The notes below the pieces were generated by a model that was not told the DNA's origin, ran no database searches, and was given only the letters and a program-made list of their open reading frames with translations. From Cyanophora paradoxa CCMP329 (taxonomy: Eukaryota; Plantae; Glaucophyta), in NCBI GenBank assembly GCA_004431415.1, contig QPMI01000022.1:372001-436000 (forward strand): a DNA stretch of 64,000 nucleotides, written 5' to 3'. Positions 13,357-62,855 of the stretch are shown piece by piece. Position 1 is the stretch's first letter, and every line of letters starts with the position of its first letter. Position numbers and translations under genes: made by a program.

Positions 13357-13867
13357 TCATGGTGCAAGGCAGGGGGCGGCGAGCGGGGCGCTCCTTGGTG
13401 GAACAAATACGTAGGCACATGCACCGGGCATGGCAGCGGCCAGGCAGGCAGTCCCTGGCAGCCGATCCTGGCATAGTGAACAGGAGCCGGGGCGCGGCGC
13501 CGGCGAGCTAGTAGCGTAAGAGGTCTTTGTATCATACATACAAGTGGTTCGTGTGGCCGGGCGGGCTGCGCGCGCGCTGCCCTGGACGCGCGCCCGTCGA
13601 GCGTGCGGGCGCCAGCTCGGGCACTCAGATGCATGCCGGCAGCGCTCAAACCTACCACGGATGCGATGCTAGGTCGCTGAAGATGCTGCGCGCGCCCGAC
13701 GCGGCCCAGCACTCGGTTTTGACGACAGCGTCAAGGGAGGGGGGTGCAGTGAATTTTTCGACCGCGGGAACAGCCGGCGGCAGACCGCCGGAGAGCCGCC
13801 CCAGCCGGCCAAAACAGCGATAGCCTAGTGCACGGAGCTGCGGGCGCTCATTGCGGTTCGCCTCGCA

Positions 13868-16061
13868 ATGAGCGGCTTCGAGATTTACATCGACCCGGAG
13901 ATTCTGGAGGAGTATGTGGCTCAGAAGAGAAAGGCGAGGGAGATCGTGGCTCTGCTGCACGAGGAGCACCAAATCCAGATTTCGATGCGCGCCCTGCGCT
14001 ACAAGCTCAGCGACCTCGACCTCTCGACGGACTACTCTCTCTCAAAGGAGGCAGTTTACGATGTCGTAGAAGAAGCGGCGACTTTGTGCGGCGACGGATA
14101 CGGCTACGACGCGATCCGCGGGGCGCTCAGGGCCGCGGGCATCACTGTGGCGAAGTCTAGGATTCAGCACGCCCTCGCGGAGCTGGATCCGACGGGACGC
14201 AACGTTCGCCTGGGCGAGTTCGCGAAAAAGCGCAGGTCCATCCACCGCTCGACCTTCTACGGGTCCGCGCCGCCACGCCGCCCGTGCCGCACCGCCGCGC
14301 CGCGCTGACGCACGCCTTGTGCGCAGGAAGTTCTTCGGCTGGAGTGTCGGTTTCGACCAGAACGAGAAGGCGGTGCCGTACACGAACGTCTACATCTTCG
14401 CGGCCGTGGAGAATACGTCCACATTCATCCTGGACTTGCATTGCGGGCTTGCTCGCTCCACTATACAAGGCTACAAACTGTACAAGTGCGCGCGAGGGCA
14501 CACGCCTCGCAGCTGCGTGCTCCGTGACCCCAGAGCTGCAGGTCGGTCGTGGAGGAGTTCGGGGTCTTCGACACGGTCTCCTCGGACTGCGGCGCAGAGA
14601 ACCGGCTGACCTGGACAGCCCACGTGTGCTCCCTCCCACTCCTCTTGCTCACCTGCGCCGCACCTGACCCCCGGGCGCGGCCACCGAAAGGCGCTCGTGC
14701 TGGAGGAAACCGAGCGGCTGATCGACGAGGAAATTGCGAAGGGCAACATCACGGACCCCACCACCGGCCTTCCCTGGCGGAGGCTCAACTTCGAAGATCC
14801 CAACGACCTGCGCGACGCCGTCATGGTGGGCCCATCCTACCGGAACCCGAAGGTCGAGAAGAATTGGAGGTGATGGACACGCCCTCTCCCCACGCATTCC
14901 TTCTGTATTTGCTCTCTCCGGTAACACTCCATGGGCAGGTGGGTGAATGTCAAGGTCACGAAGCCCATCGTGGATGCGGCTGTGATGCTGGAGATGCTCG
15001 AGTGGTACAACAGGTGCCCTTCGTGCGACCCGCCAGTCGATGACAGCTACAGACCATGATGGCCATCCCTATGTACATGTTGGAAGGCTACAATCAGTTA
15101 CTTCTGGCTGAGACTTGCCAAATTAAGAGCTCTTAATTTGCATGCGTGCATTCGAATTCACTTGGCATGCATGCTTATTATTCTCCGCTTGCATTCAGAC
15201 TCGACCCTCAACAGCTGTTTGCCATGGCGAAGGCGACCATGTACGTGATGGAGTACGGCCTCGCCATCGCGAAGAACAGCTGGAACCACCACGTGAATTC
15301 AGGCTCCAAGGAGACGGGGGGCAGAACGGCAGGCCAGACTGGTGGTATGCACTGCGGCACCTGTTCCCTGTTCTTTAAATTGTGCTGGTCCCAGCTCACT
15401 GGGCCCGGGTGCAGGCGCGAGAACATGAACTACATGCGGCCTCTGATGTTCAACCTGCCAGAGTGGACGGAAATGAAGGATATCCACAACCAGAGGGCGG
15501 CTCTGTCAACGGCTCGGTCCTTGACAGCCGCATGAAGGACCCGTTGAGCCCGACTTCGTCGTCTTTGACGAACCCCGCACGACTCTCCGGTGTGAAATTA
15601 CCTGCCCCGGGCACTCCCTTCATTGTTTATCAAGCTTCCTCACGCTCAGGATGCTGCGGGACGAGATGTTCAAGGAATGCAATGAGGACTTGAAGGAGAT
15701 CTGGAAGCATGTGGTCAACTTCGGGCGGGAGTATGATGAGGAAGCTCCGGGGGTACGTGGACGCATTGCGGAGCAGTACTCCAGCAACCCCCTTGGAGGG
15801 CTCCCCCGGCTCTTCTTGTTCATGCTGCAGCTGAACGAGCAGCTTTCCGACCTGCACCTGTACGATGTGTCCATCCCCGGCTGGATGCAGTGGGTGCACG
15901 ACGCACCCGCCAACAACGACGCGCCCCGTGCCCGGTCAATGCAGGGGATGGGCTTCTTCCCACCGGACGAGTACCTGCTGGAGCCCCAGGAAATGCGTGC
16001 AGCTTTCTTTTATTATGTGCACAATTTCGATCCCCTCGTGCGCGGCCCCCGGGCCCGCTAG
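13868..16061 (+). CDS. IS3EU-like DDE transposase/integrase with N-terminal Clr5/HTH-like domains; multi-exon
   Basis: HTH-like N-terminus (ISMRALRYKLSDLDL; GYDAIRGALRAAGITVAKSRIQHALAELDP). The integrase core has WSVGF-D-QNEK, VSS-D-CGAEN, GPSYRNPKV-E-KNWR and WNHH, matching the family pattern WHxDGxxK / RxDxGxEN / SxxNxxIERxWR / WNxH. Possible frameshift near 15500-15560. Confidence 0.85.
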
Positions 16062-16159: not shown

Positions 16160-19155
16160 AATGGAAACATCCACATACAGCAAAGTGACATTGACCTAGG
16201 CCTAGAGCTCGGGATGAACATCCAGAGACAGAACTACCTTCAAGCTTCACCTCGGCTGCAGCCAGCCTAGATGCGAGCAGCTCCCCGACAATACCTGCAG
16301 CTCGAGTGAGTTTCCAAATGCCTGCAGGTGCGGGGACGAGCGCAAGGACTCGATGGGCGCACGGGCTCAAGAAGAGGGGAAGCGCGGCCGATGCAGACGC
16401 GCTTGCGTGCGCGCTTTCGCCACGCAGCCGTGGCCCTTCCGCGACTCCGGCGATCGTAATGCTCCCGCCAGGCTTGCCGGAGCGCGCGCCGAAGCCGCAG
16501 CGGGACGCCACCTGCGGTATTGACGCCATCGTAAATGGCCCGTGCGGCGCCGCGGGCGGTGCACGGGCGCTGCGCCGGCGATGGGATCGCAGTCTGTGTG
16601 TGTACCGTAGGCGGATGCGAGCCTCGGGCGTGCCTATTCGCAGCCCGCCGCGAGGAACAGGTGTGTTGCCAACTGGCACGCCCGAGCGAGGCGGCGCGGG
16701 GCGGGGCTGGGCGGCGCCCAGGTCACTGGCGGCTCGCTCGCGCCGAGCTCGCTGCAGGAGCGCTCGGCGGGCTCCGGGATGGCTGAGTCCGGTGTACCCG
16801 GAGAATTGGGGTACACATCGAAAATGCGCACGCCGCGTCTGGCCTCGCCGGCGCAGCTCAACACACCCAAAAGGCGCGCCGTGAAAGCTATATAGCCGAG
16901 CGTAACCACTGGATCAAGTACCGTCACGCGGAAGCGATTGCTGACTGGGCAAACGGCGGCTTTGAAGGACCGAAGCCGCAGCCGCCGGCGCCACCGAGGA
17001 CCTCATAGCTAAGACAGCTGTTGAGGACAGCACCTGCAGACAGCTGTTCGCTGCGCAGCCGCCGACCAAGACGTCGACGCCAGCCAGCAGCCAGCGCCAG
17101 CCACCGCCATCAGCTGCAGCCCGCCTCAGAAAGCGACCGTTGACGTGCACGATTGCGCTCCGCACTCCCCCCTCGCCCCGTCGCCGGAGCCGATCGCCCT
17201 TAGTGCAACGGTCACTGCGACGTGCGTTGCCCGCGATCCGTCGCCATCCGCGCTGATGATACCTGTACAGGAATGAATCAGAGCTAACTGAAAACAAGGC
17301 TGAGGAGGCGGCGCCACCCGCGCCGGCTGCGTCGCCGGATGTGCCTGGCCGTGTGCCCGTGTTCCTGTTCTTCGTTCCAGTCGAGTGCGTGCTCTGCTGC
17401 TGCACAACAGTTGTACCAATCTCTTACAGTCGTGCGGCGCCCCTAGGGTCGATCCTGTGCCGCCCACGCCCGCTCCTGCTGAAGAAGTTCTCTGCCCCCC
17501 ACGGAGGAGGAGTTAGCCGAGATGGCGGCTATGGACTTGTCCGAGGGCGCTATACAGGAGCTGAGGTCTGCAGATGCTGCTGCATAGCAGATGTTTTTGC
17601 TGACAGTCGTGAACGTGCAGAGCACGTGCATCAATTTCGAAGGAGGACAAGGAGGCTGTTGATCTTCTGATCGGGATCAATGCAACCTGCTCAGTCTGTT
17701 TGAGCTCAGTCCAGGATCCTGAGAGAGGGCTCCCTGTGACGGTGGCCGACAGCGAGGGGAAGATCTGTTCCCACAAGTTCCATGAATCCTGCATCATGGA
17801 CCTGCTGAAGCACGGGAGGCCGTCCTGTCCTGAGTGGTACATACTAATCCCGCCCCCCCCCACCCACCCCCTGTGACAGTACCTTTCTGATCTCTTTACA
17901 GTCGCATGGATATCCGCACTGTGGCAAGGCTCAGCGGTGAGAGAGTGAAGACCATCTCCGAGGCTGAGTTCAAGGAGTGCAACCAGCACTTCCACGATGA
18001 CGTCGGCCTTCAGGCAACGGAGGCTTTAATCATTGCGGAGGCAGTAGATGCGGGCGCAGGTTCTCAGTCTCAAGCACCCCCTCTCCCCCTCCAGACTACC
18101 GCAGGCAGCCTGGACGGCGATGGACTTATCGTTGCCTCGTCTGCGGCGAAAACTTCCCCAACTACCACAGCCACCCTACTTGTGCTGCCACAACAAGGAA
18201 TCCATCTGCCAGCACGAGCCGGGCGGCTGCGGGCGGTCGGAAGAGGCGTGCATCAAGCGAAAGCACGTCAGGAGAGATGCATGAACGCCTACCACCCTGA
18301 ATGTGTGAACTTCGTGGTCGAGAATGGATTCAAAATGATGGAATATCTCTGTGTGTCCTTTGCATTACATTCGCGATTCAAGACCTCGCTAACGTTTTGT
18401 GTAGGCCTCGCCTGCTGCTGCCAGAAATGCCATTTGCCGGATCGGAGGATGATCCCTCTCTGAATGGCGAACTCCTCATCTGCGATGGGAGGGCGTGCGG
18501 CAGGGCGTGGCACGTCGAATGTGCTGGTTTTTCGGATGCCACCATACCCGAGGGCAAGTGGTACTGTGCGTGCCTCTGGATACTGGATGTTCATGCATCG
18601 CATTCCTAACACATGCCTTTTAGGCCTTGAGTGCTCGGAGTCAAGGAGAAGAAGAGGAGGAGGAAGGAGGAGCGGCGGCAAGCGATGCGGCGTGCAAAGG
18701 ATGAGCGGCGGCAAGCAACGCGGCGTGCACAGGAGGAGCAGGAGGAAGAGGAGGAGGAGAGGAGGAGGAAGAGGAGGAGGAGGAGCAGGAGGCGGAAGAG
18801 GAGGAGCAGGAGTCAGAGAACGAAGAGAACGAAGAGCAGCTGAAGCAGAAGGAGGCGTGGGAACAGCGGAAGCGGCTCACAGCAGCGCGCGTCAGCGCCG
18901 CCCCCACTGTCGGCACAAAGAGAGTGCGCGAGGCGAAACAACGCCAGGCGGCGGCCCTCGCGAAGATTGCCCAGCACAGGCAGCGCACTGTAGAACGTGC
19001 CGTAGCGAGCATGAGAAGATAATCGCAGGCTTTGTATGCATCTGTGCGCACAATGTAAATATTTTGATTCAGGGCTCAAGCTTGAGATCCTCGTCATCCG
19101 GGCAGGGTCACAAACTACAAGAGCTAGCTTGCGGATCCGTTCCTCCACTGCCTGA
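16160..19155 (+). CDS. RING-finger and PHD-finger protein with acidic coiled-coil tail (transposon cargo; frameshifted, boundaries approximate)
   Basis: CDGG...CSHKFHESCI...SCPE (RING-like, ~17735-17835); CMNAYHPECV; CQKC...LLICDGRACGRAWHVECAGFSDATIPEGKWYC (canonical PHD, ~18413-18570); E/R-rich tail. Confidence 0.72.
16207..16825 (+). repeat. Internal repeat A, copy 1 (~600 bp; inverted copy at 25525-26188)
   Basis: The same sequence and peptide (PKPQRDATCGIDAIVNGPCG...GWLSPVYPE) are found on the minus strand at 25525-26188. Confidence 0.92.
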
Positions 19156-21082
19156 TCCAGCACTCATTCGCACTTCCATCTGGTTTACTTGTGAGCAGCT
19201 GTGAGCGGAGAGCAGCCTGCACGTTGAGCTGGCTATCGCTACATGTGGGGAACATGAGCGTGTACACAGCAGCCCAGATCCACACACCGCACTGGAGCAA
19301 AGTGCATCAGGAAAGACAATACAGATACTCTAGAAAAGAACTCACATCGACGCAATTAAACTGAACAGCGTGGTCGTAGATGTTCCCCAGCACACTTACT
19401 CTATGGGAGTGGAGCATATCTGCAACCTTACCCAATGTTTTCGTCCAATTCATTGAATCGGCGAAGGTGCAGACAGTCTGACGTCCTTCTTTGCGGAGGT
19501 AGCCGAGAATCCTGTGTGTTGCATCAGACATCGATCTACGGAAGCAGTCTGCACGGCACACCAGTGTCCAACCTCACGCCCTGTGGGTGTCCTGTGATTT
19601 GTGTTGAAGCAAAAGAGCACATGCTTGCCCTGTCGAGCTAAGTCGACCAGCAGATGAATGTAGGCCGTGTTGTCGAGGAGGCCGAAGGGGCACGGGCTCT
19701 CCACATGCCACAGCGGGTTTCTCCATTGACTGCTGACAAGCATGAGAAGATAGATGCCTGAGGCACAGACACACACGGAAGAAGTCGGTCAAAACCATTG
19801 ATCTGAGACAGAACGAAGAACTGTACGTTTACCTGTCTGCACTTGAGAGGTAGTAAGTGGAATCTTGCCGTCTTCGGGGATCATCGCCAAGTCATCAATG
19901 ACATTCCGCACATACTCTCGTACTGGTTTCTTGGCGTCGCTGATCTTCATCGGCTTCAGTTCCTGACGACCTGGCATGGAACTGTCAGTCAATTGCCATC
20001 AACTGTGCATTCTGCAGCATACCCGGCTTCTGGTCGGAAGCTATGCATTCCTCCCCTTCATCCCATTCATTCCTATCGGTTGTGGCCGGTGTAGGATTTT
20101 CGATCTCGACGTCGACCACAGGAATCGACATGCCCACAGAGCGTAGAGCTGCTGCTCGGGCAGGCCTAATCCTCCGAGAAAGGGGCGAGACGGCGACGGC
20201 AGGGCGGGCGGGGACGGGGAGGTGGAGGCAGGAGGGGTGGCAGGAGGGGCTGGGGGAGGAACGGAAGGAGGCGCGGGGGAGGGGCGAAGGGAGAGGCGGA
20301 GGGAGGGCAAAGGAGAGGCGGGGGAGGGCAAAGGGAGAGGCGGGGAGGAGGTGCGGCAAAGGGAGGAGGAGCGGGGGGGGAAACAACCCCATCTGCCGCG
20401 GCATCTGCCGCGGGGGGGGCTGCAGCGGGAGGGACAGCAACGAGCGCTGCGGCCAGGCGCAGCGGCGGATCCTTCTTGAAGGCGTCGGCAGCGAGCCGGA
20501 CCAGGAAATCTCTCAGCGTCTCGCGTGGTGCGTCCTTGTACACGTGCATGTAAACGGCTTGCACTTGCGCGAGCATTTGCACGCATGTGTGCATATGCGT
20601 GATCACAGGAGGCCCGCATACTCCGTTTTCCCCATAATACACCGATTCCGAGATAGCACACCTGCAGGCAGAGTCAGCAAACACCGCGCACGAGTTACCG
20701 CGGCGGGGCGCACGCGCGGCCAGCGATAGCCCCGATCCAAAGGAGGATCCTGCAGATCTCGCAGACGTGAACGACACGCTTCGAGCTATCTGTGTAAAGC
20801 TGGGTGTTGCGCTTGACTTGCTGCCCCGTCAAGGGATCGTACACCTGCTTGCTGAACGTGTCCTTCACGCCGAGGATCATGCATGTCTGCTCCAGGTGCC
20901 GCACGCCGACGGGCAATCCTGTATCGGGATCCAGATCGTAAAAGCCGTTGGCTAGCCCCCAGCTCGGTGGCCGCCGGCATCCGGGGCAGCACGATTCCTG
21001 CGCGCGGCCTTTCCGCGCCCGGCTCGCTTGTCTGTGCGTCTGTACGCGGCCTCCGCTTCCGTTCCTCGGCCGGCGCTGACAT
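19070..21082 (-). CDS. Ulp1/SENP-like (C48) cysteine protease (transposon cargo; frameshifted)
   Basis: Catalytic motifs occur in order: FNTN...GHW (~19565), FADSM (~19460), and QFNCVD|CGVWI spliced across a GT-AG intron (~19345/19291). Confidence 0.72.
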
Positions 21083-21332
21083 GTCTGCCGTGCCGAAGGC
21101 CGCCTATGTGTATGACGGCTGCCCAAATGGGCGTCAGCGCGGGAATTCCGAAGATTGCGCGGGGCGTGCGGCGTGATTTAGCACAAGAGGGCTAGCACCG
21201 CGGTAGGAGCTGAGCAGAAGCCTTGCCGTTGAGCTCAGAGCAGGAGAACGGGACGGCGGGTGCTCCGGCAGGGGTACCGGTACCGAAGCCCCAGCGCTGG
21301 GATCTCGAGCTGGTGGGCAGTTCCGAAGCAAA

Positions 21333-22038
21333 ATGTATAGGCAGCTGCGTCGTCTCGCTTCGGCCGGAGGTACTGAACTGGTATGTGCGCTGAGTGCGCT
21401 GCGCCGCCAGTGGGTCGCCTGTGCGCTAACTGCCAGGCTGCACTCGCTGCCGGCAGGTAACGGCAAGGACGCGTGGTGTGAGCGTGCGCTCGTTCGACTG
21501 CCGCTCGTGCCGCCAGTATCGCTGCGAGTAAAGTTTGCCGCAGACCCGCGGCGAGGCCGTCTGCCGCGCACCACCGCTGCCATCGGCATCGATCGCCGCG
21601 CGGGCTGGCTTCTGCCGAAGCAGTCGGGCATCTGGCGCGCCGGGACCGGCCTCTTCGTGGAGCGGCCGGGCGTGCGCCGTGGTGCAGTTGTTTTCAGACC
21701 AGGTGACCTCATCACCCCGTACCGCGGGACGATCTACACGAAGACTCAAGCGCTGGAGATTTTCGCTCGCGAGCCCTCGCGTCGCCTCTACAGCATCTCG
21801 TTCAAAGGCAAGTACGGGCACACGTACGTCCTCGACGCCACCGACTTTCGGAGGCGAGCCTAGCGCGCTTCGCAAATGACGCGGATAAGCCCGGGACTCA
21901 CCCCGCTTCTCGAACAACGCCTTCTTCCGCGTGGAGAAGGACGGGCAGGTCTGGCTAGTCGCCGACTGCGTCCTCAAGCAGGGGATGGAGATCTTCGTCC
22001 CGTACGGGCAGCTGTACTGGAGCGTGCTGGCTCGCTAG
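21333..22038 (+). CDS. Minimal SET-domain lysine methyltransferase (two frameshifts: pseudogene or assembly errors)
   Basis: SGIWRAGTGLF, GDLITPYRG, YVLDA, then after shifts SLARFAND, NNAFF and GMEIFVPYGQLYW*: the full set of SET motifs. Confidence 0.8.
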
Positions 22039-22303
22039 CTCTCTTCTCGTATCTCACGCGCTATCCTGGCGTTGTAGACCTCCTTTTCTCTCTTTTCCGG
22101 TTCTGTTTCTTCTCCCATCCAAATGAACCCAGTCTCTCTCATGCCAGCAGCTAGCTCTGGGATGGCAGACTGGCCTGCGGCTGCGCACGCGCCAACGCGA
22201 CACCGCATGCACTGTGCGTCGAAGCGGGATGCGATGGCAAAAGAAAGAGCGCGGCTCTTGATGGGATGGGAAGAAATGTGACGCGAGTGAGCGCGCGACG
22301 TGT

Positions 22304-23593
22304 CGCGGCAACCGCGGCATTTTGAGTCTATCCGCGGCAACTCCGCGGCAGTTACGTGAGAATTAATTAACCACGAAATTAAAAAAGGGGGTAGTCCAAA
22401 TGACGCGGCATCTTCGCGGCATTCCGCGCTACTAACAAATTCTGCGGCAATTACCGGTAGATGTCGTTAAATCCGGCAGTTGGCGACAGAACGCGGCATC
22501 CAAGGCGTCGTCGCGCTGCTTTCGCGGCTCTCGCCCGAGAATTAATTAACCACGAAATTAAAAAGTGGGGTAGTGTGATTGACGCGGTGTTTCCGCGGCA
22601 CTCCGCGCTACTAGCGGCAATTACTGCCACACGTCGTCAAATTCGGTAGTTAGCGTCAAAATGCGGCATCCGCGATGGAATCGCGTTTTCTACGCGACGG
22701 TTTCCCAAGAATTAATTAACCACGAAATAAAAAAGGGGGTAGTCCAAATAACGCGGCAACTTCGCGGCAGTTTTCCCTAACCGCGGCATGATTTGACAAT
22801 CGCGGTACATTGCGGTTGTTCGCGGCAAATACGAATCGCGGCGTCAATTCTGGCTTGCCATCTGGCGCGGATCGTGAGCTTCATGATCATGAGGCGCGTT
22901 TTCTCCCGCGTCATGATGCCTGCATGTCCAGAGGTACTCTATAAATATTTTAATCATGTTTAGGAGGAGGCGGGATTGTGCATGCAGACCACAGACACAT
23001 GTGTCGAACAGAAAAGTACAGGATGAACTGTCAGACTGACAATTCATGAATTGCCATAAAGCACTGAAGCTAGGGTGGTCTGTGGAAAAAGCGCACACGT
23101 TCTAAGCATGATTAAAATACTTATATAGTTCCTCTGAACATGCCTGCATCATGATGCGGAGGAAACGCGCGTCATGATCATGAAGCTCATGATCTGCGCC
23201 TCATCGGGACATACGAAGCGACGCCGCGGTTCTGTAGAGCCGCAAAATGCCGACAAACCTCGCGAGAACCGCTAATTGCCGCTAGTAGCGCGGAGTGCCG
23301 CGGAAACACCGCGTCAATCACACTACCCCCACTTTTTAATTTCGTGGTTAATTAATTCTCGGGCGAGAGCCGCGAAAGCAGCGCGACGACGCCTTGGATG
23401 CCGCGTTCTGTCGCCAACTGCCGGATTTAACGACATCTACCGGTAATTGCCGCAGAATTTGTTAGTAGCGCGGAATGCCGCGAAGATGCCGCGTCATTTG
23501 GACTACCCCCTTTTTTAATTTCGTGGTTAATTAATTCTCACGTAACTGCCGCGGAGTTGCCGCGGATAGACTCAAAATGCCGCGGTTGCCGCG
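22304..23593. repeat. 1.3-kb nested palindrome: outer arms 22304-22623/23273-23593, inner arms 22864-22965/23100-23200
   Basis: Outer arms are reverse complements, with one indel noticed in ~320 bp. Five copies of (G/A)AGAATTAATTAACCACGAAAT(T/A)AAAAA..GGGGTAGT occur at 22358, 22537, 22707 and reversed at ~23323 and ~23502. Inner arms are ~100 bp and imperfect. Confidence 0.95.
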
Positions 23594-23673
23594 GATGACG
23601 CGGATTGTCGCGAACGTTCAAAGAACGCGTTCTGCCGCGGAATGCCGCTCGGGGGTTCACACTACCCAAGACG

Positions 23674-24804
23674 ATGGCGGGAGCGTCGGTGGACAGCAGC
23701 ACGCAAGTGGAGCGGCCTTGCTGCAACGAGAAAGTCATGACGATCGTCGAGCACAGTCTGAATGTGCGTTGCCTTTGTGGTCCGCGCGACGGTAGCGGCG
23801 CCACCAGCTATCTGATGAACTTCGGAATTCCCACAGCACCTCAACGAGAGGCTTGCCGATAAGCAAGCGGAGGTGGACACTTTGCACCGAAGGTGGCCGA
23901 GATGGAGGCCAGGGAGAGAGCGAACGAATTCGTCGGACCGCAGATTCTGGGACTGACAAAGGTGCGCGTGCGATGCGCATGCGGCGCTCAGCATGCCTCA
24001 GCTCTGCGGCAGGACGTATGCGACAGGTACCGCGAGGTGAAAGAGGAGCTGAGCAAGTCTCAGAAGGCGCTGGCCGATGCGAACGCCCGAATCCGTGAGG
24101 TCGATCTGGGACTGACAAAGGTGCGCGTGCGATGCGCATGCGGCCGCTCAGCATGCCTCAGCTCTGCGGCAGGACGTATGCGACAGTACCGCGAGGTGAA
24201 AGAGGAGCTGAGCAAGTCTGAGAAGGCGCGGGCCGATGCGAACGCCCGAATCCGTGAGGTCGAGGAGGCGAGCTCGATCTTCGCAGTACGATGCTCGGAG
24301 CTCGCAGTGCGATGCCACGTGCCTTAGTTCTGCTCGCAGATCCTTGGCAAGAGGATGCGCGACGAATTGGAGTGCGGGTGCGCACGAAGGACAGTGCGTG
24401 GTCATTCCATTTGCTGCGCCTAGACGTGCCGCGCCTTTGCTGATAAATGTGCCCGATGCAGATCTCAAGGACATCATGGCCTACAGAGCGGGTTGCGACT
24501 ACATCGGTGTGATGCTGGATGCACGCCCTTAATGAGATCTTTGTAGGGCTTCAACTCCGAGAGATCCCCTCAGGCTTCATTGTTTTTCTGTTCAGATGCT
24601 TTTAAGTCCATATTGATTGCCTTTCTTGCCCGCGGCCCTGTGGCTTGTGCAGCGTGTCAAAGGAGCAAAAGTAGCTGCTTAAAGAATAATTGTACACAAA
24701 TGAAAGGGCACAAGCAAGGAACGTGCAAAGTGAAGGATGCGAAGGGCACATGCACACGAGTCACCTACTCCATCATTGACCTGTACATATCTATAGGTCT
24801 GTAG
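23674..24804 (+). CDS. Hypothetical cargo protein X: coiled-coil plus Cys-rich C-terminus, with duplicated exon
   Basis: MAGASVDSST...; an exon/intron unit is duplicated in tandem (~23947-24106 / ~24106-24263); DLKDIMAYRAGCDYIGVMLD; CAACQRSKSSC...HKQGTC. Confidence 0.5.
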
Positions 24805-24849
24805 ATTTTCTCGGGCTGGTCGGGACCGAGGGTCCAGCCGTAGGCAAAT

Positions 24850-25500
24850 GCGAAGTACCTGTGAGCAAGCAGCGCCTCAGCGGAACAGCGGAACGCATTG
24901 CAGCGGCGCGGACCCGTTGTATCGGGGGCGCGCGGGCGTAGTTGACGAAGCGATCGCGGAGCTCCTTCCGGCCCTGCACAGCTGGGTTGTAGGCACGGCA
25001 TGTGTGACCTGCACACCGCGGCAAGGCACGCGTGAGCCAGATTGGATAGACTGGGGATATACTAGTGCAGCATGGCAGATCGCACTCTATCTTCATGGCG
25101 CGGCGCTGGCGACGCGCTGAATCCATGACTCCGACGCTTTGATTCCTCGCTCGCGGAGGATCGCGCGGATCCCGCGGACCTCGCGCCACACCGGATCGAA
25201 CACCGCGAGGGCCTTCCGAATCCTCGACTTCGACGCTGTGATGCTTGGGCGCGGAGGGCCGTGCGGATCATGCCGCCGCCGAAAAGGGGCCATTTAAGTT
25301 AACAACTCCAGCACGGCGACACAAAGGACATTGAAAGAGAGAGCGTAGTTCGTTGAGAGGCCAAGCTCGCGGAGCCTGGAGCGCAGAGCGCGCTGTTGAG
25401 GTTGATGCCGTGCTGCTCGCTAGCAGAGTCAGTATCTCAGCGGCCGTCTTCCTCTGGTCCACGTAGCCGCGCAGAGTCTCCTCCTCGATGCTGCTTGGCT
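24850..25500 (-). pseudogene. Degenerate paralogue of the transposase N-terminal HTH region
   Basis: IEEETLRGYVDQRKTAAEILTLL, MIRTALRAQ-SITASKSRIRKALAVFDP and IRAILRERGIKASESWIQR align to transposase IDPEILEEYVAQKRKAREIVALL and AIRGALRAAGITVAKSRIQHALAELDP. Frameshifted; no DDE core seen. Confidence 0.72.
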
Positions 25501-25524
25501 GGGCCGGGCTCGCGCCACCGCGGC

Positions 25525-26188
25525 CATTTCGCTGCGTACCCAACACCTCCGGGTACACCGGACTCAGCCATCCCGGAGCCCGCGAGCGCTCCTGCAGCGA
25601 GCTCGGCGCGAGCGAGCCGCCAGTGACCTGGCGCCGCCCAGCCCATCCGCGCCGCCTCGCTCGGGCGTGCCAGTTGGCAACACCACCTGTTCCTCGCGGC
25701 GGGCTGCGAATAGGCACGCCCGAGGCTCGCATCCGCCTACGGTACGCACACAGACTGCGATCCCATCGCCGGCGCAGCGCCCGTGCACCGCCCGCGGCGC
25801 CGCACGGGCCATTTACGATGGCGTCAATACCGCAGGTGGCGTCCCGCTGCGGCTTCGGCACGCCCTCCGGCAAGCCTGACGGGAGCATTACGATCACCGG
25901 AGTCGCGGAAGGGCCCACGGCTGCGTGGCGAAAGCGCGCACCGTGGCACGCAAGCGCGTCTGCATCGGCCGCGCTTCCCCCTCTTCTTGAGCCCCGTGCG
26001 CCCCATCGAGTCCTTGCGCTCGTCCCCGCAGTTGCAGCTAGGCATATGGACACTCACGCGAGCTGCAGCTAGGCATATGGCTATAGCTAGGCAGTCTCTG
26101 GTCAAGGTAGTTCTTTCTCTGGAGCTGCTCGCATCTCGGCTAGCTGCAGTCTCTGGTCAAGGTAGTTCTTTCTCTGGATGTTCACGAG
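25525..26188 (-). repeat. Internal repeat A, copy 2 (inverted)
   Basis: Reverse complement matches 16207-16825 with scattered substitutions and indels. Confidence 0.92.
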
Positions 26189-26294
26189 TACAGAGTACAG
26201 AGATGATTGCACACCCTCAACCCCGGACGCGTGTTACGAAAGGACAAGAAAGCATTGCACTGAAGAAACATGCTAGGGTTTAGCATCTGGATTG

Positions 26295-29000
26295 TTAGTG
26301 TCTAAGACCCGCTGTTCTTGCTTTTTTGACTATGGCGAGGCCACCATTGCCGTTGCTTTCGACTATTGCTGACCACACCTGTATTCCTTCCTTGTTGAAG
26401 GCTTTTTTCTCTTTCCACATCCTGGTCGACATGTCGAGCTTGAGTGGAATCGTGTTGCGCCCGTTCTCCAGAACCCGCTTCAAATGACTGCATGCCTCTG
26501 CTTCTCCTCCAACTTGCACACGCCTGCTGGAATCTGGAAATGAACGTCCACAACGTTCTTCCTTCCGGCCTGGTCTACAACCCGAATTTCAGGCAGCGGG
26601 ATCTCATCGGTCTCGCTGCGATTTCGATCATTCACGTGTAAAAGAACACACAATTGAAGGAAGGGCTACACGCACGTGATTCGTCTTTTCTTCCTTCCTG
26701 TGCTCTTCTCCTTGGGGCCCTTGCTGCTGCCCCCGCCTTCGATCGCTTCGATTCTGAAGAAAGTTAGGATACAGACGGGAGTCTTTCGGTTCACACGTGC
26801 CATCATCGGCCTCGACGCCGTCAGGAGCCACATCCTCGTCCTCGTCCTCGTCCTCCTCTTCCCCCCCCCTCCTCCTCCTTCTGAAGATCCACAGGGGGGG
26901 TGGAGGTATAGCAGCAGGCGGGGCAGGAGCAGGGCAGGAGCGGGAAGGGCCCCGCCCTGCTCCAGCCAACGCTTTGTCCGCCATGGCATTGAGAAGGAGG
27001 GCCCGCTCCTCTGGAGTGCGGCGACGAGCCTCCTCTTCCTCCTCCTCCTCCTCATCTGCTGACCCGTGAGCTGCAGCCGGACCTGACGGAATTTAGTACG
27101 CGCAAGCACAAACGTGCCCTGGCTCGTCCGATGCATTCTCCTGCTCTCCAGCCCGGCAATTGCCTTCTGTGAGCCGTGATCAGGATGCGGGCAGGAGAGT
27201 GAAGGGAAGGACACAAACCACGCTGTCGATGTTGTGGGAGGTTTTGAGATTCTCCATAAAGAGAGCACGCAATTTAGTCTCGGATTTGAACTGTTGATTC
27301 ACCAGGAATACGATGAACGGTTTAGCTTCGGCCAGAGAAATCGGCTGTTTCTCAACCACGTGCTTGCTCATGAGACTCTCCATATCGTTCATCTTATCGT
27401 CAGGAAACACAACGTCCCCGGCTTCCCGCTTGCACATCTCGGCACACGAAAGCCTGCAGATACGAGTCAGCGGAGCGCAGACGGGGTTCACCATCAGAAT
27501 GCTCACAGATCTGCGGCGAGGGACAAGGAAGCCTTCGTCCTCTGCTGGCACATTTCGTGGCTTTCTCGGCGACGAACTTCGTCGCGCTCCCCAGCAAGAG
27601 CTTGGTTTTTTGGTTGCCAGGAAGAGTTTCCGCTGGCCCACGGTCTTCTGGATCCACTGCAAGTTGAGTTGGTCTGTGTGCTGCTCGATTTTGTTCAGCA
27701 GTGAACATGCCGCGCGCGCCTGTCTGCGCGGGCCGAACCTGCTGCGGGGTTCGCTTTGGCTTGGACGTGGCGCCGATGCCCCGCCCGCGCTGCCTGTGGT
27801 GCAGCTGCTCCGCCGACTTCGCCTGCTCCGCGAGCAGCTTCGGCACATCGCAGGGTTGGTGCTGATGAAGTAGTATAGATTTCCCTGCCGGATGTGCTTG
27901 TCGAATATCTGCGCGCATTCAGAAGCAGGCGAGCATCGACGGCGGCGAACTGCCGACCTGCTGGTTGGGCACCCAGTGGCCAGCGCCGCAGAGCACCACG
28001 TAGAGTTTGAGCAAGGGCCGTGCGAATCGGGAACGTCGAAGATCGCCGCCACTTCGCGATGAAAGCATCTAGTTTCGCCGGTGCCAGTGACACGGTGTTC
28101 TCGCCGTGCTTCGATATATCCTTCACGGCTGTTACGATGAGGTCGGGAGCTGCTCACCCGGCTGCTCAAACTGCGCGGCCGCGACAGCCGCCACGGGCGG
28201 CGCAGGAGCACCGGCGGCCGCAGCCGGGAGCATGGTAACGACGCGTACCCCTGGCTTGACGACGCCGTCAAACCCATGGACTCGCGCAACCCGGCACCTG
28301 CCGCGGCCGGCGTCTTTGAGTCCGGGCCGCTTCGCGGCAAGGAGTTCACTTTCCGGCGGCCTGCAGCAGCCCCCGAGCCGGCGTCCGCTGCGGGCGCCGC
28401 TCCTCCGAACGCGAGCTCATCGCCGACCTCCAGCGGCAGCTGGAGGCGCTCACGGTGGAGGTGCGCACGATAAAGACGGAAGTCGAGGAAGGTACGCGGC
28501 CGCCGTCGCCCGTGGCGCGTCCTCGTTTTGAACCGCCATCCGCGCCGAGCTAGGTCAGCGCCCTGCGCCCCCGCAGCCCGCCGCGCGCAAGCTCGGCGCA
28601 ACGCATCTCCTCCTCCACCGAACGAGAAGTACACCGGAGTCCGTCGACGGGCAAGATCCACAAGGTCTCCAAGGTCTCGGGCCAGAACCCGACGTGCCCG
28701 GCCCTCCGCGTGCGTACAGCTCGCGTGCCCCGGCTTTGAGGCACTCAGTAGCTAAAGGCGGTGCGCGCAGATGAAGGGAAGATCCTCTGGCCCGAGTTCA
28801 GCTCGGAGGAGGCGCTCCGGGCCTCGGACCCAAGTACAACAAGGAGGGCGCTCGCTGCCGCAACTGCTGGCGCTAGGCGCTAGCCGTGCGGGGTCGCTCC
28901 CTCCGCGGCGCTTCCTGTTCCGCGTGAAGCTCTGTGAACGTGTCGCTGAGTCGTGCTCTGAACACGAGATGTTGTTGTCAACTTGGAAGGGAACCTTGAA
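26295..29000 (-). CDS. Hypothetical cargo protein Y (multi-exon, frameshifted, unknown function; boundaries approximate)
   Basis: Protein-like segments ECAQIFDKHIRQGNLYYFISTNP, LLNKIEQHTDQLNLQWIQK, MESLMSKHVVEKQPISLAEAKPFIVFLV and HLKRVLENGRNTIPLKLDM...LRH*. Confidence 0.45.
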
Positions 29001-29282
29001 GGGATGCATGCATGGCCAGGCACGCAGAGAGGAGAGCGCAGGCACACATACGAAATCAATCCAGATTGCACACAAATACATACACAGCGATAAACAGCCG
29101 ACATAGATACATACACAGCGATAGACAGCACATTACTATAGATAGCAAACACATGGATACATATATAGAGTTGCGAGCCCAGCGGGAGAGCTCGGAATGG
29201 ACATGAAGGAAAATAAAATCCTACCAAGAGCACAGGCTATCTGCAGCTACTGCTGTGCAGAGCTAGCAGCTACTTCAGAGCA

Positions 29283-32200
29283 ACTACTGCTGCCCCTTCT
29301 CCTGCTGCGCCTTCTCCTTTGCGGCCTCCAGGTCGAGCCCGCCGCTGGCGAGGACGGCGTAGTTCATCGTGCGGGCACGCTTGCGCGAACCCTCCGCCGC
29401 CGGACGGGAGCTCGAGGCGGCCGGGGTGTCGAGAGGGAGGGGATCGGAAGAGGAGGAGCCGAGCTTGGGTCAGGGAGGGGCGGGGCCGCAGGGAGGGCCT
29501 GGGCTGCTGCCTCCTTCTCCGTCTTGGACCGCCGGCCCCGCTTCGGAGGCGCCGGCGTTTTCTCCACGTGTTCCACGTCCTCCACGGGCCCGTCCTCCTC
29601 CTCGCAGTGGCAGAAGTCCTTGGACCCCTGCCGGCACACGCCGAAGCAGGGCCCTGGTAGCACTTGTAGCCGAGCCAGTCGCAGACGAAGACGTGCTTGC
29701 TGGTCCTGCTGAACTTCTCCACAATTTCGTCGTGCTCCGGGTTGCCGATGCGCTTGTAGCCGCAAACACTGCAAGGATGGACGAGGAAAGCAGACTTCCC
29801 TGCTCCAGAAGCATGAGACAGGGGACGGCGAGGGCAGAAACGGGCGTACCGTTGCGGGCATCCTTCATCGCGTCCTCGAGCTTGTCCTCCGGGACGACGT
29901 ACGGCCGCAGCTCCAGGTTCACGAGCTCCCGATGGGCATCCTCGATGCGGAGCTGCTGCAAGAGTCAGGCAGTCCCTGCAAGGGTTGGGTTGGAGCCTGA
30001 GCTGTCACAGACCGAGAGCGGCGAGTCATGCCGTCCCGCAGCTTGAGGACGTCGGTGGGGCACATCTTGTGGAACATGGCGGCGTGGCACATTGCAATGC
30101 CGTTGACATACGACTGCAGGAGGGCGCCGCCCGACGTGGATTGACCAGCCGCTCCGGGTCCTTGCGGTTGAGGGAGTATTTCTGCTCAGCACCAGAGTGA
30201 GATTCGGTGGACAGAGGGGAACTAAGCAGGAAGGGCAGTCTGAGAACCTTTTCGGGCGTAGTCATCGTCCGCAGGATGGCATGCTGCGACCCCGCTCGAA
30301 GTACATCGATGTGAGCACCACACCGATGTAGTTGCAGTTCGCCTCGTAGGCCATCACCTCGGTGAGCTCTGCACGGGGCACATGCATCAGAGAAGGGCGC
30401 GGTGCATCGGGTGCCAGGAGAGCACAACGCACTGGACACTGGGAAGTTGTCAGGGGTGATTTCATTCACGGCGTCCTGGAAGTTGTTGGGCCGCCGGCCC
30501 GCGCCCTTCGGCGGCTTGTTGGGGACGAACATCTTGTACACTTCCAGGGCTCCTCAGCGTTCAGCTTCTTCGTCATGAACGCTGAGAATGCATCTGCAGA
30601 TAGAAGAGCAGGTGCTAAGGTTAGACTGAAGAGGGACCTTTACAGAAAGGAGCACAAGCCAAGAAAGGAGAAAGGAGCACAGACCAGCGAGCTGCGTGTA
30701 GGGGTGCGGATCAAGCATGCCTTCGATCTCGATTGTGATGGTCGTTGGATCCTTCCCGGACGTCCCGAGCTTGAAGACGACGTTGTACCGGGGCTCCTGG
30801 AAGTCGGCCACACCACGGCTCCGGCGGGCGGCCAATTCAGCCTTCTTGTTTACGAACTGCTCGAAAGCAAGCGGTCAGTGTGCTCTAGAGGCCAGAGAAG
30901 AGGAATCAAAGGCATGCACGCACGTCCCTGACAATCTTGGCGGTGGTTCGCCCATGAAGATGATGTGCTGGCCAGTCGGTTTGGCCAAGTGCTTGTTCAC
31001 GAAGAGGTTCCAGTCCTGCATGCTGACAGGGTCCTGCGGGTGTTCAAAAAGCATGCAGTGAGCACAGAGAAAGAAGGAAAAAAGGAAGAGGTGGGATGGG
31101 GAAGAAGAGGACGCAATGCATGCTGCTAGGCGGCTAACCTGCATGACCCACATCTTCTCGATGTTGTCCAGGGGACGACATGCATCTTCTTCGCGGGTTG
31201 CTCGGATCCACGATCTCGGTGATGACAGCCGTGGCAACAGTCAGCGTGTTCCCCACTCCGGCTGGTTCGCGCTGCGGTTCGTGATGTTCCGCGCCATCTC
31301 GAAGCCCTTCGGGTCGAAGTAGTTCACGAAAATCTCCTCGCTCAGGATGTGTACTGCGACGAAGACGCGCGATCAGGTTCGAAAGGAAGACCCGCGCAAT
31401 CACGGAAGCAACGAGCCGAGGATCGCGACGCACTCGGTGCGGAACTCTTCCCGAGGATCGCGAGCATGTCGTGGAGAGGCTTCCAGGCCGCGTCCGCGGC
31501 CGGGCGTAGGTCGCGAATGAGAAGGGCGTAGGCTTGACTGCCTCGATTCCCTTTCCGCTCTTCACCGCGGCACCCGCCGCAGCCATGACCTTCTCTTTCT
31601 GAGTGACCGCGGCCGCGGCGGCCTTGGCCTTCGCATTCGTCGTCACCTGGGCGCGAGGGCCACCTTGCCGAGGGGTCGAACCCCTCCGGCTGCGCGTATA
31701 GCGTGAGGAGGATCGCATGGCGACGCGAGGATGCGGGCGCACGATCGTGGGCCCGCCCGAGCCTGTGCGCGTGGCGCCAAAATTTGAATGTCAGTTGGGC
31801 GCCAAAATTTGAATCGACATGGCGGCGATTGCGAGCGCACCGCGCCCCGAGCTCGCGACCGCGTCCGCAAGGCCCTGACTGGAGCGGCCGCTAAACCGGA
31901 CCCCGAAGGTGGCCGCCCGTTGGGCGGGCTCGGCCGGCGCGGCGACCTCGGCTGGTCGTCTGCGCGCCGAGCGGTTAGCGCGGGCGGCGGTTAGCGTGAG
32001 CACGCGCACCCATTGCCGTGTAGTAGACGCCCTGCTTGCCCGTCTTCCAGCCCGAGGTGGAGCACAGGAGGCTGATGTCTTCGAGCTCCTCCGACGTGCC
32101 GTCGTGGCGCTTCTCGAGCACGAATTCCATGTTCTCGGCGTCCAGATTCTGAAACACAGTCGTCTTGAGCAGCCGCAGGACAACGTCAACGGGCGGCGTT

Positions 32201-34290: not shown

Positions 34291-34835
34291 GCTATAGGCT
34301 AGTCTCTATATTCGAATCCGAGCCAAAAGCTGGCCAGCTTCAGGTAGGGGGCCCCGCACCGGCCCCGCGGCCCTAGCTCCAGCAAGCCAAGTTGAGCTCA
34401 TTTTATTTGTGTAAGTGTATTTAATTTGTGAGGCCCGCGGTACGCGGGCTTTGATTTAGTGAGATTCGAGTCAGTGTGCATGAACCTGTTAGGTATACGT
34501 AGTTCAAGCTGATTCTGAGTGTAATTTGGACAAGATATCTAATGGTTGACGTCATGATCATGAGCGTGACCCGCGATCGGCGAGCGGGGGGAAAGAAGGG
34601 GAGGGGTGGGGGTGGAGGGGGAGTTAGGGTTGGGGCGAGAAACGAGATCCGGCTCTGAACGCTAGAGCGCTCCGCCTCCCCCCCCCCCCCCCCCCCCCCC
34701 CCCCGCCGCCGCCCACGCCCCATCGACAATCTCGAGCTCAAGCGACTTCGGCGATGCATTCGGACCGCGTGCGAAAGAGAGCCACAGAACGGTGAATCGT
34801 CTTTCTATCTGATTAGAGTGCACTGCCGAACTGCC

Positions 34836-36281: not shown

Positions 36282-39200
36282 CTGAAGCCTCGACCTTCCT
36301 AACCGCTGGCGCCGGAGGAGCCGGGGAGGGCGCCGAGGCCGACGCGGCGGTGGCGGGCGGGCCGGAGAGGGCGCGGCGGAGGCGGGGCGAGAGGCGGCCG
36401 CCGAGGGCGCGATCGACGCGAAGAGGCCGTCCCAGACCGCCTGCTCCACCAGCGATCCCAGCTGCCCCGTCGCCAGCTCCCGCGGGGTGCGTTCCCCGTG
36501 CCCCGGCGCGTGCCTCGCCTCGGGCAAGGGCACTCCAGCGAGGGCGGCGGCGCGGCGGCGCGCGTCCTGAGCTTTAGGGTCAGCGGCGTGCGCGTTTGGC
36601 GAGGGGGGGGGGGGAACGGGGGTAGAGGGTCGCACGGCGCGGCGGGGTGGGCGGGGGCGTCCCGGGCCTCCTGGGAGGCCCCTCGGCCGGCGCCGGGGCC
36701 GGCGCCGAGGGCGCGGCGGCCGGCGGGGCGGACGTGGCTCGCGCGAGGCTGCGGCCGGGGCACGTCAGAGGACGGGACCAGAAAGGGCGCCAGAGCAGAA
36801 GAAGCTAAGCTACGGTAAAGCTAAGCTGAGCGAAGTTAAGTTAGTGAGTTAGTTGAGCTAATCCAAGCTAAGTTAGTTACGCTAAGCTTAGTTAAGCTAA
36901 GCTAAGTTTAAGCTAAGTTAAGTTAGTGACTTAGTTAAGCTAATCTAAGCTAAGTTAGTTAAGCTAATCTAAGCTTTGTTAAGCTAAGCTTTAGCTAAGC
37001 TGGGCTCTGCGCACGAGAGGAGGAGCTGGAGGGGCCCGGGTCCGAGGAGGGCCGCCGCCGCGCTGAAGAGGGCGTCCGCGAGGCCCGCCGTCCGCACCGA
37101 GAGCCGCAGCAGCGCCCGCGAGACGCTGCGGGGGGCGGAGCCGGGTCAGATCAGATCGGATCGGATCAGATCCGATCAGATCAGACGGATCAGATCAGAT
37201 CAGAACGGACCTGGCGAGAGTCTCGCGCCGCTCGGCGTGCGACGGGGAACGCAGCAGCGCCTCCGCCAGGTGCCGAACCGCGTCCAGGGCGCCCGGGCCC
37301 AGCGCCTCCCCCGCGAGCCTGTACCCCCCGGGTTCGATCGGGGGGGGAGGGAGTGGGAGGGGGGTACGGGCACGCACGCCCAGAGGTCCTCGAGGCGCTC
37401 GGCGGTGGGCTGGCCCACCAGCGACCACACGATCCTGCGGCGAAAGCGAACGAAGGCTCAAGCCCCGCAAAGCGAAGGCGAACGCCGATCCGGAAGGGAA
37501 GCGGAGCACCCGCGGATCGAATCCCACCCGCCCTCGCTTAGCATCGACCCGAAGAGGCTGCGCAGCACTCAGGCGTTAGCAAGGGGCGGCGGGGGCGAGG
37601 GATCAGATCAGATCAGATCAGATCTGAGCTGATCCGATCTGACGCACTCGGCGAGAGAGTGCAGGCGCTCGATCCAGCCCGCCCCCGGCATCGTCTCCAG
37701 GAACCTGCGGGCGGGCCGCTTAGATCAGATCAGGTCAGATCAGGTCAGATCAGATCAGATTGGACGCGCCTCCGCATCGCGAGGAGCTTCTCATCGCCGC
37801 CGTCGGAGAGGAACGCGTGCGCGAGGCTGCGGAGAGGGCTCAGATCAGCTCAGATCAGATCAGATCGGATCTGACGCACTCTCGGACGGCCTGGAGGAGG
37901 GGCCCCGTCTCGGCGTGCTCGTCCGTGAGGAGCGACCGAAGGACGCTGTGGCCGCGCCGGCGTCGGCGGCGGGTTGCGGGGCGGCGGGCGGGCGGGCGGG
38001 ATACCTTGCGACTGCCGCGGGCTCCTGCCCCGCCCCCTCCCCCTCGAAGAGGGGGCCGCGCCGCGTACCCCTGCGGCGGGGGGGGGATGAGTGGGGCCGA
38101 GCGGGGGAGGGCGAAGGGCGGCGGGCGCACCTCCGCTCGGGCGAAGAGGGCGACTGGGCGGGAGGGGGCGCCGGAGGGGGCGCCGGCGCGGGCGCCGGGG
38201 GCGGAGGGGAGCGGGAGGGCAGAGGGTCCCAGGGCGCTGGGGCGGCCTCCGGGGCCCAGGTTTCTACGGAGGACATCGTCACGCGCCGCGGCGCGGCCTC
38301 CGCGGCCGGGGCCGGGGCCGGGGCGGAAGGAGCAGCAGGGGCCTGGGCTCGCTCCGGATGCTCGCCCCACGCCTGCACCACCGGACGCCGCTCCACGTGG
38401 AAGCGGGCCGGTACCCCCGGGGACGCCCCCGCGGCGGGTACGGCCGCCGCGGCCCGCTCCACGCGGAAGGGGACTCCGGCGGGGGGGAAGATCTGCTGCG
38501 GGGCCGGCCCGAGCTGCGCCGCCGGGGCGGCGTCGGCGGAGAGGCGCCCAGCGGCGCTGTCCAGCAGAGCCGCCAGCGTCCGATCGCCCTCCGCCCGCGG
38601 GGCCGCCGTCGCCGCCGCGGGAGCCGCGGATGCCGGTGGGGAGGTGCGGGGCCGCTGCTCGGGGCGCGCGCCGGGCCCGCGGCGCGTGGCGCCCCCGCGG
38701 CGAGCTGGGCGACCGCCTGCTCGCGGGCCTTGGCCTTGCGCCAGCGCTCCAGCAAGTCCTCCGCGCTGTAGTCGAACTCCGTGCTGCGCGGGGCGTCGGC
38801 GGCGGCGGCGGCGCCCGGGCACTAGGAGAGGGGCGCCCAGCACCTTTCCCGCGCCCGGCGGACCGGCGGCGGCGCCTGCGGTTGGTTTAAGAGGGCAGCG
38901 GGCGAGCGGGATTGCGGGGCGCGGACCAAGGGGACGGCGCGCGCAGCGGCGGCAGCAGAGGCGGTGGCGGCGGCGGAAGCGGCGGCCGACGGCCGGCGGG
39001 GCACGTAGTAATCGTCGTCGTCGTCGTCCTCGTCGTCGTCCTCGCGGGGGGCGCCGGCCACGTCACCGGGGGCGGCGAGGGCGCGCGCGCTGCGCGGGGC
39101 GTTGTCGGTCGGCGGCGGGTGGAGGCGGGCGGGGGCGCTTCAGCTGCGGGCAGGCACCTGCGGGCGAGGAGGGCGGACGCCCGCTCGTCGAGGGCCGCTA

Positions 39201-61545: not shown

Positions 61546-61675
61546 AGGTGAGACCGGTTAGTTTAGTTTAGATTCATTTCGGCGATTCGCATCCCTTCTC
61601 GTTTCCCGTTTTCTACCTAGTATAGTCCCGGCTTCTAGGCCTCTAGTCCCGTTTTCGCTTTCGTTGTTTCTTCGG

Positions 61676-62230: not shown

Positions 62231-62436
62231 TCCTATTTCAATAGATTAAAGCGTAGCTATCTCGTGATTCTTTAAGACCTTCTTTTGAGCTCGCGATTGA
62301 CTCGCCCTGTCCGCAGGAGTGCGTAGACACTCCCTCCAGGACCGGCAAGCGCACACAAGCGACGCGGAGGATCCGAATCCCAAGGTTCGCTCATCTTTCT
62401 CGCCGCTCAAATGATGCTCTAAAGAAAGAAAGAAAA

Positions 62437-62525
62437 AGTGCCGGTGATGATAAAAAGGTTTTTGGTTGACCCTCCTAGTGGCGGCTCGCCGTCCTGCGGA
62501 CAACAACCCGCGCTGCTGAGGCACT
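62437..62525 (+). ncRNA. Box C/D snoRNA candidate (copy 2)
   Basis: AGTGCC-G-GTGATGA...CTGA-GGCACT; one internal substitution versus copy 1; lies in a putative intron 62385-62594. Confidence 0.8.

Positions 62526-62821: not shown

Positions 62822-62855
<34 letters not shown>

Follow-up and report, generated by a model that had tools for sequence, protein, structure and literature searches.

A multicopy, repeat-bracketed trio of RING-PHD, Ulp1-like and divergent SET-domain genes in Cyanophora paradoxa CCMP329: a candidate mobile element

The window analysed here is a stretch of 64,000 nucleotides from the glaucophyte Cyanophora paradoxa CCMP329 (assembly GCA_004431415.1, contig QPMI01000022.1, positions 372,001 to 436,000 of the forward strand), and all positions below are counted from its first letter. 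The recognised domains all lie inside 17.6-22.0 kb, where they belong to three separate genes on both strands and not to one protein. Gene 1 (about 17.6-19.0 kb, plus strand) encodes a protein in which a PHD finger comes after a RING-H2 finger. Gene 2 (21082 to 19072, minus strand) encodes a 580-aa protein with a C-terminal Ulp1-like motif set and is the counterpart of EukProt model P0006. Gene 3 (21333-22035, plus strand) encodes a minimal, divergent SET-domain protein of 190 aa. The trio is bracketed by inverted repeats, and the protease-like and SET genes recur in nearly identical form on other contigs. We read this unit as a young, unclassified, possibly non-autonomous DNA-type mobile element that carries three accessory genes, and give this reading a probability of about one in two.

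The genes of the window were searched exon by exon, and whole-protein searches used the paralogue models P0002, P0005 and P0006. The Pfam sweep was run on 288 open reading frames of at least 35 aa, of which 206 (at least 60 aa) cover about 8-34.5 kb and 82 shorter ones (35-74 aa) cover 16.1-30.1 kb. Apart from RING and PHD, the Pfam matches in these frames are limited to a sub-threshold Clr5-like helix-turn-helix and a few weak, chance-like hits. The stretch from 22.04 to 29.8 kb, with its 523-aa open frame (27183-28751), yielded no recognisable family. The tRNA and Rfam scans of the window gave no matches. A tblastx comparison of 8-34.5 kb with the window returned nothing beyond low-complexity noise and known repeats.

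The RING and PHD fingers of gene 1 are confirmed as domains at the level of sequence, as an earlier note on this DNA had anticipated when it listed a PHD finger and a RING-like finger, the latter as a possible ubiquitin ligase (E3). The RING-H2 exon (17619-17836, plus strand) matches zf-RING_2 and zf-C3HC4 of Pfam, and the gene starts further upstream. In the exon frame 17613-17873, zf-RING_2 scored 29.4 bits against a cut-off of 27.3 (E 9.4e-07) and zf-C3HC4 26.9 against 21. All eight ligands are present from position 17688 in the C3-H2-C3 order and with canonical spacing (C-x2-C-x22-C-x-H-x2-H-x2-C-x11-C-x2-C). The eighth ligand, the last Cys of the RING, is built by splicing: its codon, TG/T, spans a 65-nt GT..AG intron at 17837-17901 of the plus strand, which gives CPE/C in the protein (slashes mark splice junctions here and below). 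Searches against PDB gave weak matches of the RING to the RING-H2 ligases EL5 and AMFR (E 0.2-1). A long exon (17902-18440, plus strand; open frame 17891-18460) continues the RING exon in frame and contains a weak half-PHD at 18272-18355 of the same strand (Pfam PHD, E 0.057).

The whole PHD finger extends over about 18413-18632 on the plus strand, and its C4-H-C3 ligands are spread over several pieces. The first C-x2-C is CQKC at 18419-18430, within the long exon and one base out of frame. The core (..LLICDGRACGRAWHVEC..KWYC) lies at 18436-18565 on the plus strand, in a frame one base off the preceding exon near 18440. The last C-x2-C (WYC/LEC) stands beyond a 58-nt GT..AG intron (18566-18623, plus strand), in an exon that runs on as a charged low-complexity tail to about 19.0-19.2 kb. 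The finger scored 25.8 bits for Pfam PHD against a cut-off of 24, and 31 against 27 for PHD-1st_NSD. It matched 81 PDB sequences at E<=1; all 60 of the 60 matches listed carry PHD fingers, and the top ones are NSD2 and NSD3 at 6.4e-07. The likeness to the PHD fingers of the NSD family and to the ligases EL5 and AMFR is confined to the finger domains, the rest of the gene 1 protein being without relatives. A word search with the 190-aa RING-PHD exon found no model among proteins of 105-332 aa, the length range covered. A CW-like Cys cluster, also listed in the earlier note, was not recovered: zf-CW (PF07496) matched none of the 288 frames, and the regular expression C..W..C..C..W found nothing in 16-30 kb.

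The protein of gene 2 consists of an N-terminal part of unassigned fold, a Pro/Ala-rich repeat and the C-terminal Ulp1-like motif set. One exon, searched against 1.84 billion representative proteins, returned a single cluster, formed by P0005 (234 aa) and P0006 (580 aa), both from Cyanophora. P0006 shares exact 6-mers with the window along its whole length, except at residue 39 and in the copy number of the Pro-rich repeat (20344-20209); its mapping requires one-base frame changes at about 21014, 20968, 19142 and 19098. Within the last roughly 200 residues (exons at 19142-19758, minus strand) the stretches LLDNTAYIHLL, GHW, FADSM and VQFNCVD/CGVW follow one another in the order of the WLND helix and the His, Asp, Gln and Cys boxes of Ulp1/SENP. 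Introns of the minus strand at about 19561-19511 and 19345-19292 belong to this part of the gene, and an intron splits the last motif. A frameshift at about 19555 was considered and rejected in favour of a GT..AG intron of about 50 nt, which the database model uses too. In P0005 the motif residues are H104 (GHW), D123 (FADSM), Q155 (VQFN) and C161 (DCGVW), which places 19 residues between H and D, 6 between Q and C and 57 between H and C. The corresponding distances in yeast Ulp1 are 17 for H to D and 6 for Q to C. The full pattern occurred in none of 300,000 protein shuffles, and Q.N..DCG alone in 10 of them.

The SET gene carries the motifs RFANDA and GMEIFVPYG..YW at 21591-22035 of the plus strand. 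An ELxxxY-type motif with the catalytic Tyr is present as GMEIFVPYG (GMEIFVPYGQLYW at 21982-22020). In the window the domain is spread over three frames by two single-base losses relative to the paralogues: TTTCCGG appears as TTTCGG at about 21849, and at about 21904 a run of C counts four bases instead of five. Because of these frame breaks the SET exons of the window gave no Pfam match. The intact paralogue P0002 (190 aa, present in two identical copies) matched Pfam SET with 22.1 bits and an E of 2.1e-4 over profile positions 10-105 of 105. Compared with PDB, the first half of the SET protein matched 10 sequences, all of them SETD8/KMT5A SET domains in the expected register at E about 1, and no others. 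Searches of PDB, PHROGs and NCBIfam with the full-length paralogue gave no family or relevant match, and an AlphaFold2 model of P0002 computed without an alignment was unusable (pLDDT 36). Judged by its motifs and matches, the SET domain is real but divergent.

The start codons of the protease-like and SET genes lie 250 bp apart on opposite strands (21082-21333), so that the two genes would be transcribed divergently; this short distance suggests a shared bidirectional promoter. Five GT..AG introns, all short (about 50-75 nt), are distributed over the trio. Their sizes match the gene structure of the C. paradoxa genome, which has many short introns with a mean of 86 bp (PMC6704402).

Mobility is what we infer from the copies and the repeats. 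A word search with the SET frame recovered one cluster of SET gene models, all from C. paradoxa: five EukProt accessions, each on a different contig, with 98-100% identity. The protease-like gene has two further models besides the window, P0005 and P0006. Together, the models place one or both of these genes on at least six contigs (tig00000113, 00000215, 00001049, 00020519, 00020689 and 00020921), which resolves the dispersal of the copies at the level of contigs. The protease-like model P0006 is accession P019272 (tig00000215_g18607), and the next accession, P019273, is a SET copy; since the two are consecutive, the divergent pair is taken to be conserved in a second genomic copy. Essentially no amino-acid substitutions separate the copies. 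Such a multicopy, near-identical unit fits a mobile element.

The bracket around the trio was found by blastn of the window against itself. The left arm lies at 16215-16823 and the right arm at 25527-26184; 16292-16823 aligns with 26071-25527 at 92.7% over 549 nt, and 16215-16284 with 26184-26121. The inverted repeats are thus about 600 bp long with about 93% identity, and their core stretches are 98-100% complementary. They delimit a unit of about 10 kb that contains the whole trio, are the sole structural bracket found and serve as candidate termini. The earlier note had extended the element to 29.8 kb, a right limit that is unsupported: the bracket ends at 26184, and nothing was recognised downstream of the SET gene as far as 29.8 kb. 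Within 16-34 kb the G+C content of single kilobases ranges over 51-67%, compared with 70-82% at 35-39 kb. The C. paradoxa genome as a whole has 67.6% G+C; repeats account for 29.4% of it and unknown repeats for 11.5% (PMC6704402).

Several further structures were noted in or near the bracketed unit. Just 3' of the SET stop codon stands a 1.29 kb palindrome (22304-23593), whose 320-nt outer arms show 99.7% complementarity and which has internal sub-repeats of about 170-180 bp. It contains 21 of the 48 CGCGGCA heptamers of the window, 12 on one strand in its left half and 9 on the other strand in its right half, and it may represent either a nested foldback element or an array of binding sites. 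Within the unit of about 10 kb, a 159-bp sequence is tandemly duplicated at 23946-24263 (2.0 copies, 97% identity); the duplication sits in a coiled-coil-like open frame at 23863-24324 (plus strand) with weak Pfam matches (CCDC85, E 9.5e-4). The sub-threshold Clr5-like helix-turn-helix is located at 13829-14305 on the plus strand (20.0 bits against 22.3), and a similar stretch, ..E..YV.Q.K.A.EI..LL.., occurs at about 25380-25480 on the minus strand, just inside the right repeat arm; the two may represent related DNA-binding genes. An inverted match of 83 nt joins 24434-24516 and 30314-30396 (76% identity; about 60% as protein, QHHTDVVATRSVGH..), a small piece common to the bracketed unit and the region on its right.

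A number of results weigh against the interpretation as a mobile element with enzymatically competent cargo. For the element itself, the inverted repeats lack sharp outer ends, and no direct repeat of at least 8 bp (8-11 bp sought) flanks them as a target-site duplication; shared 6-7-mers near the outer ends do not abut them, and AGAG is the only possible candidate. No transposase, integrase, reverse transcriptase, recombinase, helicase, polymerase or capsid was found by Pfam in the 288 frames. The published repeat analysis reports little or no recent repeat expansion in the C. paradoxa genome (PMC6704402). For the protease-like protein, Pfam gave no C48 (PF02902) match with the exons, P0005 or P0006 even at E<=1; PHROGs and NCBIfam gave no match for the models, and their PDB sequence matches include no protease. 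A word search at E<=10 detected no relatives of this protein outside the C. paradoxa genome. A single-sequence AlphaFold2 model of P0005 (mean pLDDT 35.3) was unusable and lends no fold support. For the SET protein, the position of NHSC reads RFANDADKPG (NDAD), with the Asn kept and the His replaced by Asp, and the score of P0002 falls 0.3 bits below the Pfam cut-off of 22.4.

The claims of the earlier note have to be read in the light of these results. It had placed all the domains inside one element; the adjacency of the trio, its copies and its repeat bracket agree with this, the missing transposase and target-site duplication do not, and the domains belong to three genes on both strands. 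Its complete SET motif set holds for RFANDA, for GMEIFVPYG..YW and for the match of the paralogue, and falls short at the missing NHSC His and at the Pfam cut-off. The Ulp1 H-D-Q/C motifs of a de-SUMO-type protease are present on the minus strand with the right order and spacing, while profiles, PDB and fold prediction gave them no support. The note had itself named non-recovery of the domains by profile searches as the outcome that would count against it, and for the protease domain Pfam, PHROGs and NCBIfam recovered none. The protease exons escape Pfam because they are divergent, and the profiles may fail because, compared with Ulp1, about 45 residues are missing between the first helix and the His box. 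The gene 2 product is therefore filed under the working label of a putative clan CE-like protease, outside demonstrated C48 membership, and the motifs are what sustains that label. PR/SET proteins such as PRDM9 also lack the NHSC His and are active nonetheless.

Other element types and searches were covered as well. The identities Polinton/Maverick, DIRS, Crypton and Helitron were rejected, as no hallmark enzymes were found. The Pfam sweeps over about 8-34.5 kb contained neither a protein-primed polymerase nor a packaging ATPase. A low-G+C block at 42-48 kb, a possible autonomous partner, has no long protein-like frames. Scans for close relatives in IMG/VR and JGI metagenomes and a scan for exact 38-mers gave no matches.

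The trio could instead be an ordinary, lineage-specific cluster of host genes that lies in a recently duplicated segment, or in long-read contigs that were not collapsed, and is not mobile at all. We regard this as unlikely. It would account for the absence of a transposase and of a target-site duplication, for the normal short spliceosomal introns and for proteins that are almost identical between copies, as expected of very recent duplication or of redundant contigs. The G+C content of the SET gene at third codon positions is high (0.80-0.96), a value presumed for host genes of a genome with 67.6% G+C. The little repeat expansion described for the genome (PMC6704402) also points this way. 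Against a host cluster stand the presence of one or both genes on at least six contigs, the inverted repeats of about 600 bp on both sides of the unit, a G+C content below that of the flanks, and the lack of relatives outside the C. paradoxa genome, which would be unusual for host chromatin enzymes.

Genes for SET, RING and Ulp1-like protease proteins are frequent in the genomes of giant viruses, and the unit might accordingly be the remnant of an integrated large DNA virus or a virus-like element. Its gene repertoire, orphan sequences and lower G+C content fit such an origin, for which the vSET protein of chloroviruses, which methylates host H3K27, offers a precedent (reviews such as PMC3089700). 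This origin is nevertheless very unlikely: the open frames require several short spliceosomal introns, no capsid, polymerase, packaging ATPase or integrase family occurs in about 8-34.5 kb, and no relatives were found in the IMG/VR close-relative scan or in PHROGs.

The condition of the reading frames bears on the last alternative. Compared with the paralogue models, the window copy has six confirmed one-base losses (at about 19098, 19142, 20968, 21014, 21849 and 21904) and a seventh inferred in gene 1, near 18440, all of them within about 4.5 kb. Five of the six confirmed losses lie in runs of G or C. The assembly was produced from PacBio RSII reads with Canu and polished by read mapping (PMC6704402). 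Since the indels come without substitutions, in G/C runs and within a repeat of a PacBio assembly, they point to residual long-read consensus errors rather than decay or, less probably, to real slippage mutations. Gene models on the contig of the window are truncated because of the single-base losses; P0004 (tig00000113_g5682.t1), for example, ends exactly as the truncated SET frame of the window does, so that the window most probably belongs to contig tig00000113. The window copy is accordingly not classed as a pseudogene, and the ratio of nonsynonymous to synonymous substitution rates (dN/dS) is uninformative at such identity. That the genes are Pack-type fragments of captured host genes, passively carried by a non-autonomous element, non-functional and evolving neutrally, would suit the at least six, probably seven, one-base frame breaks and the SET domain without the His of NHSC, but is very unlikely, as the genes are whole and not fragments, possessing a start codon, introns and a stop codon, intact copies exist (two of SET, at least one of the protease-like gene), the breaks come with zero or one amino-acid substitution and fit PacBio error better than decay, and word searches detected no host parent gene.

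If the unit is a mobile element, as we prefer, it can be compared with known carriers of chromatin-related domains. Ulp1-type domains are reported in the Zisupton/KDZ group, which the earlier note named among their carriers. For Mutator-like elements, also named there, the association is documented: transposon proteins of Ginger1 and of Mutator-like elements (KI-MULE/Kaonashi) carry a Ulp1 protease domain, sometimes together with a PHD finger (PMC2836005). The common ground with the trio consists of Ulp1-type motifs and a PHD finger on a multicopy element with inverted repeats of 0.1-0.6 kb. In Ginger1 and Mutator, however, pfam02902 and smart00249 detect the Ulp1 and PHD domains, which are fused to an identifiable transposase, whereas the protease-like domain of the trio matches no profile and is encoded by a gene of its own with no transposase beside it; moreover, the trio joins its PHD finger to a RING finger and has a SET gene besides.

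Fungal lineages of the Kyakuja-Dileera-Zisupton (KDZ) group carry a gene for a TET/JBP dioxygenase (PMC12730594). They share with the unit described here the combination of a large DNA element and an accessory enzyme acting on epigenetic marks. No transposase of the KDZ type was detected, and the enzyme of the trio is a candidate histone-type lysine methyltransferase, i.e. a writer, not an enzyme of DNA demethylation. In Arabidopsis, the anti-silencing protein VANC of the Mutator-like VANDAL elements binds short motifs arrayed in the non-coding parts of the element (PMC5735166, PMC10398659) and alters the chromatin state of its own copies. The likeness of the trio lies in the array of CGCGGCA (21 copies) that adjoins its genes. 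VANC differs as a sequence-specific DNA-binding protein without RING, PHD or SET domains, while the trio is known from sequence alone. The chlorovirus protein vSET resembles the product of gene 3 as a very small, stand-alone SET protein from a genetic parasite of an alga. There is no detectable sequence relationship between the two, and the SET gene of the trio has NDAD in place of NHSC, is nuclear-encoded and contains introns.

A mode of action can be outlined from the domain set, in which enzymatic activity, substrates and any effect on silencing are all conditional on the predicted functions. The PHD finger would dock on histone H3 tails, and the RING-H2 finger would recruit an E2 enzyme. 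The SET protein would methylate lysine, and the protease-like protein would remove SUMO or another ubiquitin-like modifier. As a net effect, chromatin or repair factors would be modulated for the benefit of the element. An anti-silencing or integration-targeting role, as the earlier note had proposed, would be compatible with these domains. The full proposal, an element with its own histone-type lysine methyltransferase, a PHD/RING-H2 reader and E3 and an orphan Ulp1-like protease, with which it could place or remove chromatin and SUMO/ubiquitin marks, either where its own copies lie or at sites of integration, is considered quite unlikely. To our knowledge, within a narrow check of the literature, no SET-type methyltransferase has been described that is transposon-borne and accompanied by both a RING-PHD protein and a protease of the Ulp1-like type.

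Outside the bracketed unit the window contains additional repeats. Poly-G/poly-C tracts of 15-30 bases and GGGGA-type repeats are located at 8800-9100, 34670-34700, 50400-50620, 59260-59290 and 62810-62850. A 196-bp unit forms about three tandem copies at 61675-62262 (region 61642-62262), with a further copy 2.8 kb upstream (58823-59051). A direct repeat of 91 nt (99% identity) is found at 56894-56984 and 62438-62528, 5.5 kb apart. Microsatellite-like arrays of GATCR pentamers (GGATCAGATCAGATC...) occur in the G+C-rich flanks at 3714-3776, 37132-37888 and 57352-57423.

Few carriers of chromatin tools are known among mobile elements: chromodomains on retrotransposon integrases, Ulp1 and PHD domains on Ginger/Mutator transposases, TET/JBP on fungal KDZ elements and VANC on VANDAL. 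If the unit were confirmed as an element, it would be among the first characterised repeat families of a glaucophyte, in a genome of which 11.5% consists of unknown repeats (PMC6704402). Should it prove to be merely a duplicated host cluster, C. paradoxa would still have three lineage-specific chromatin-type genes without relatives elsewhere. Provided that its proteins are active, the element would illustrate how selfish DNA is able to rewrite the chromatin of its host.

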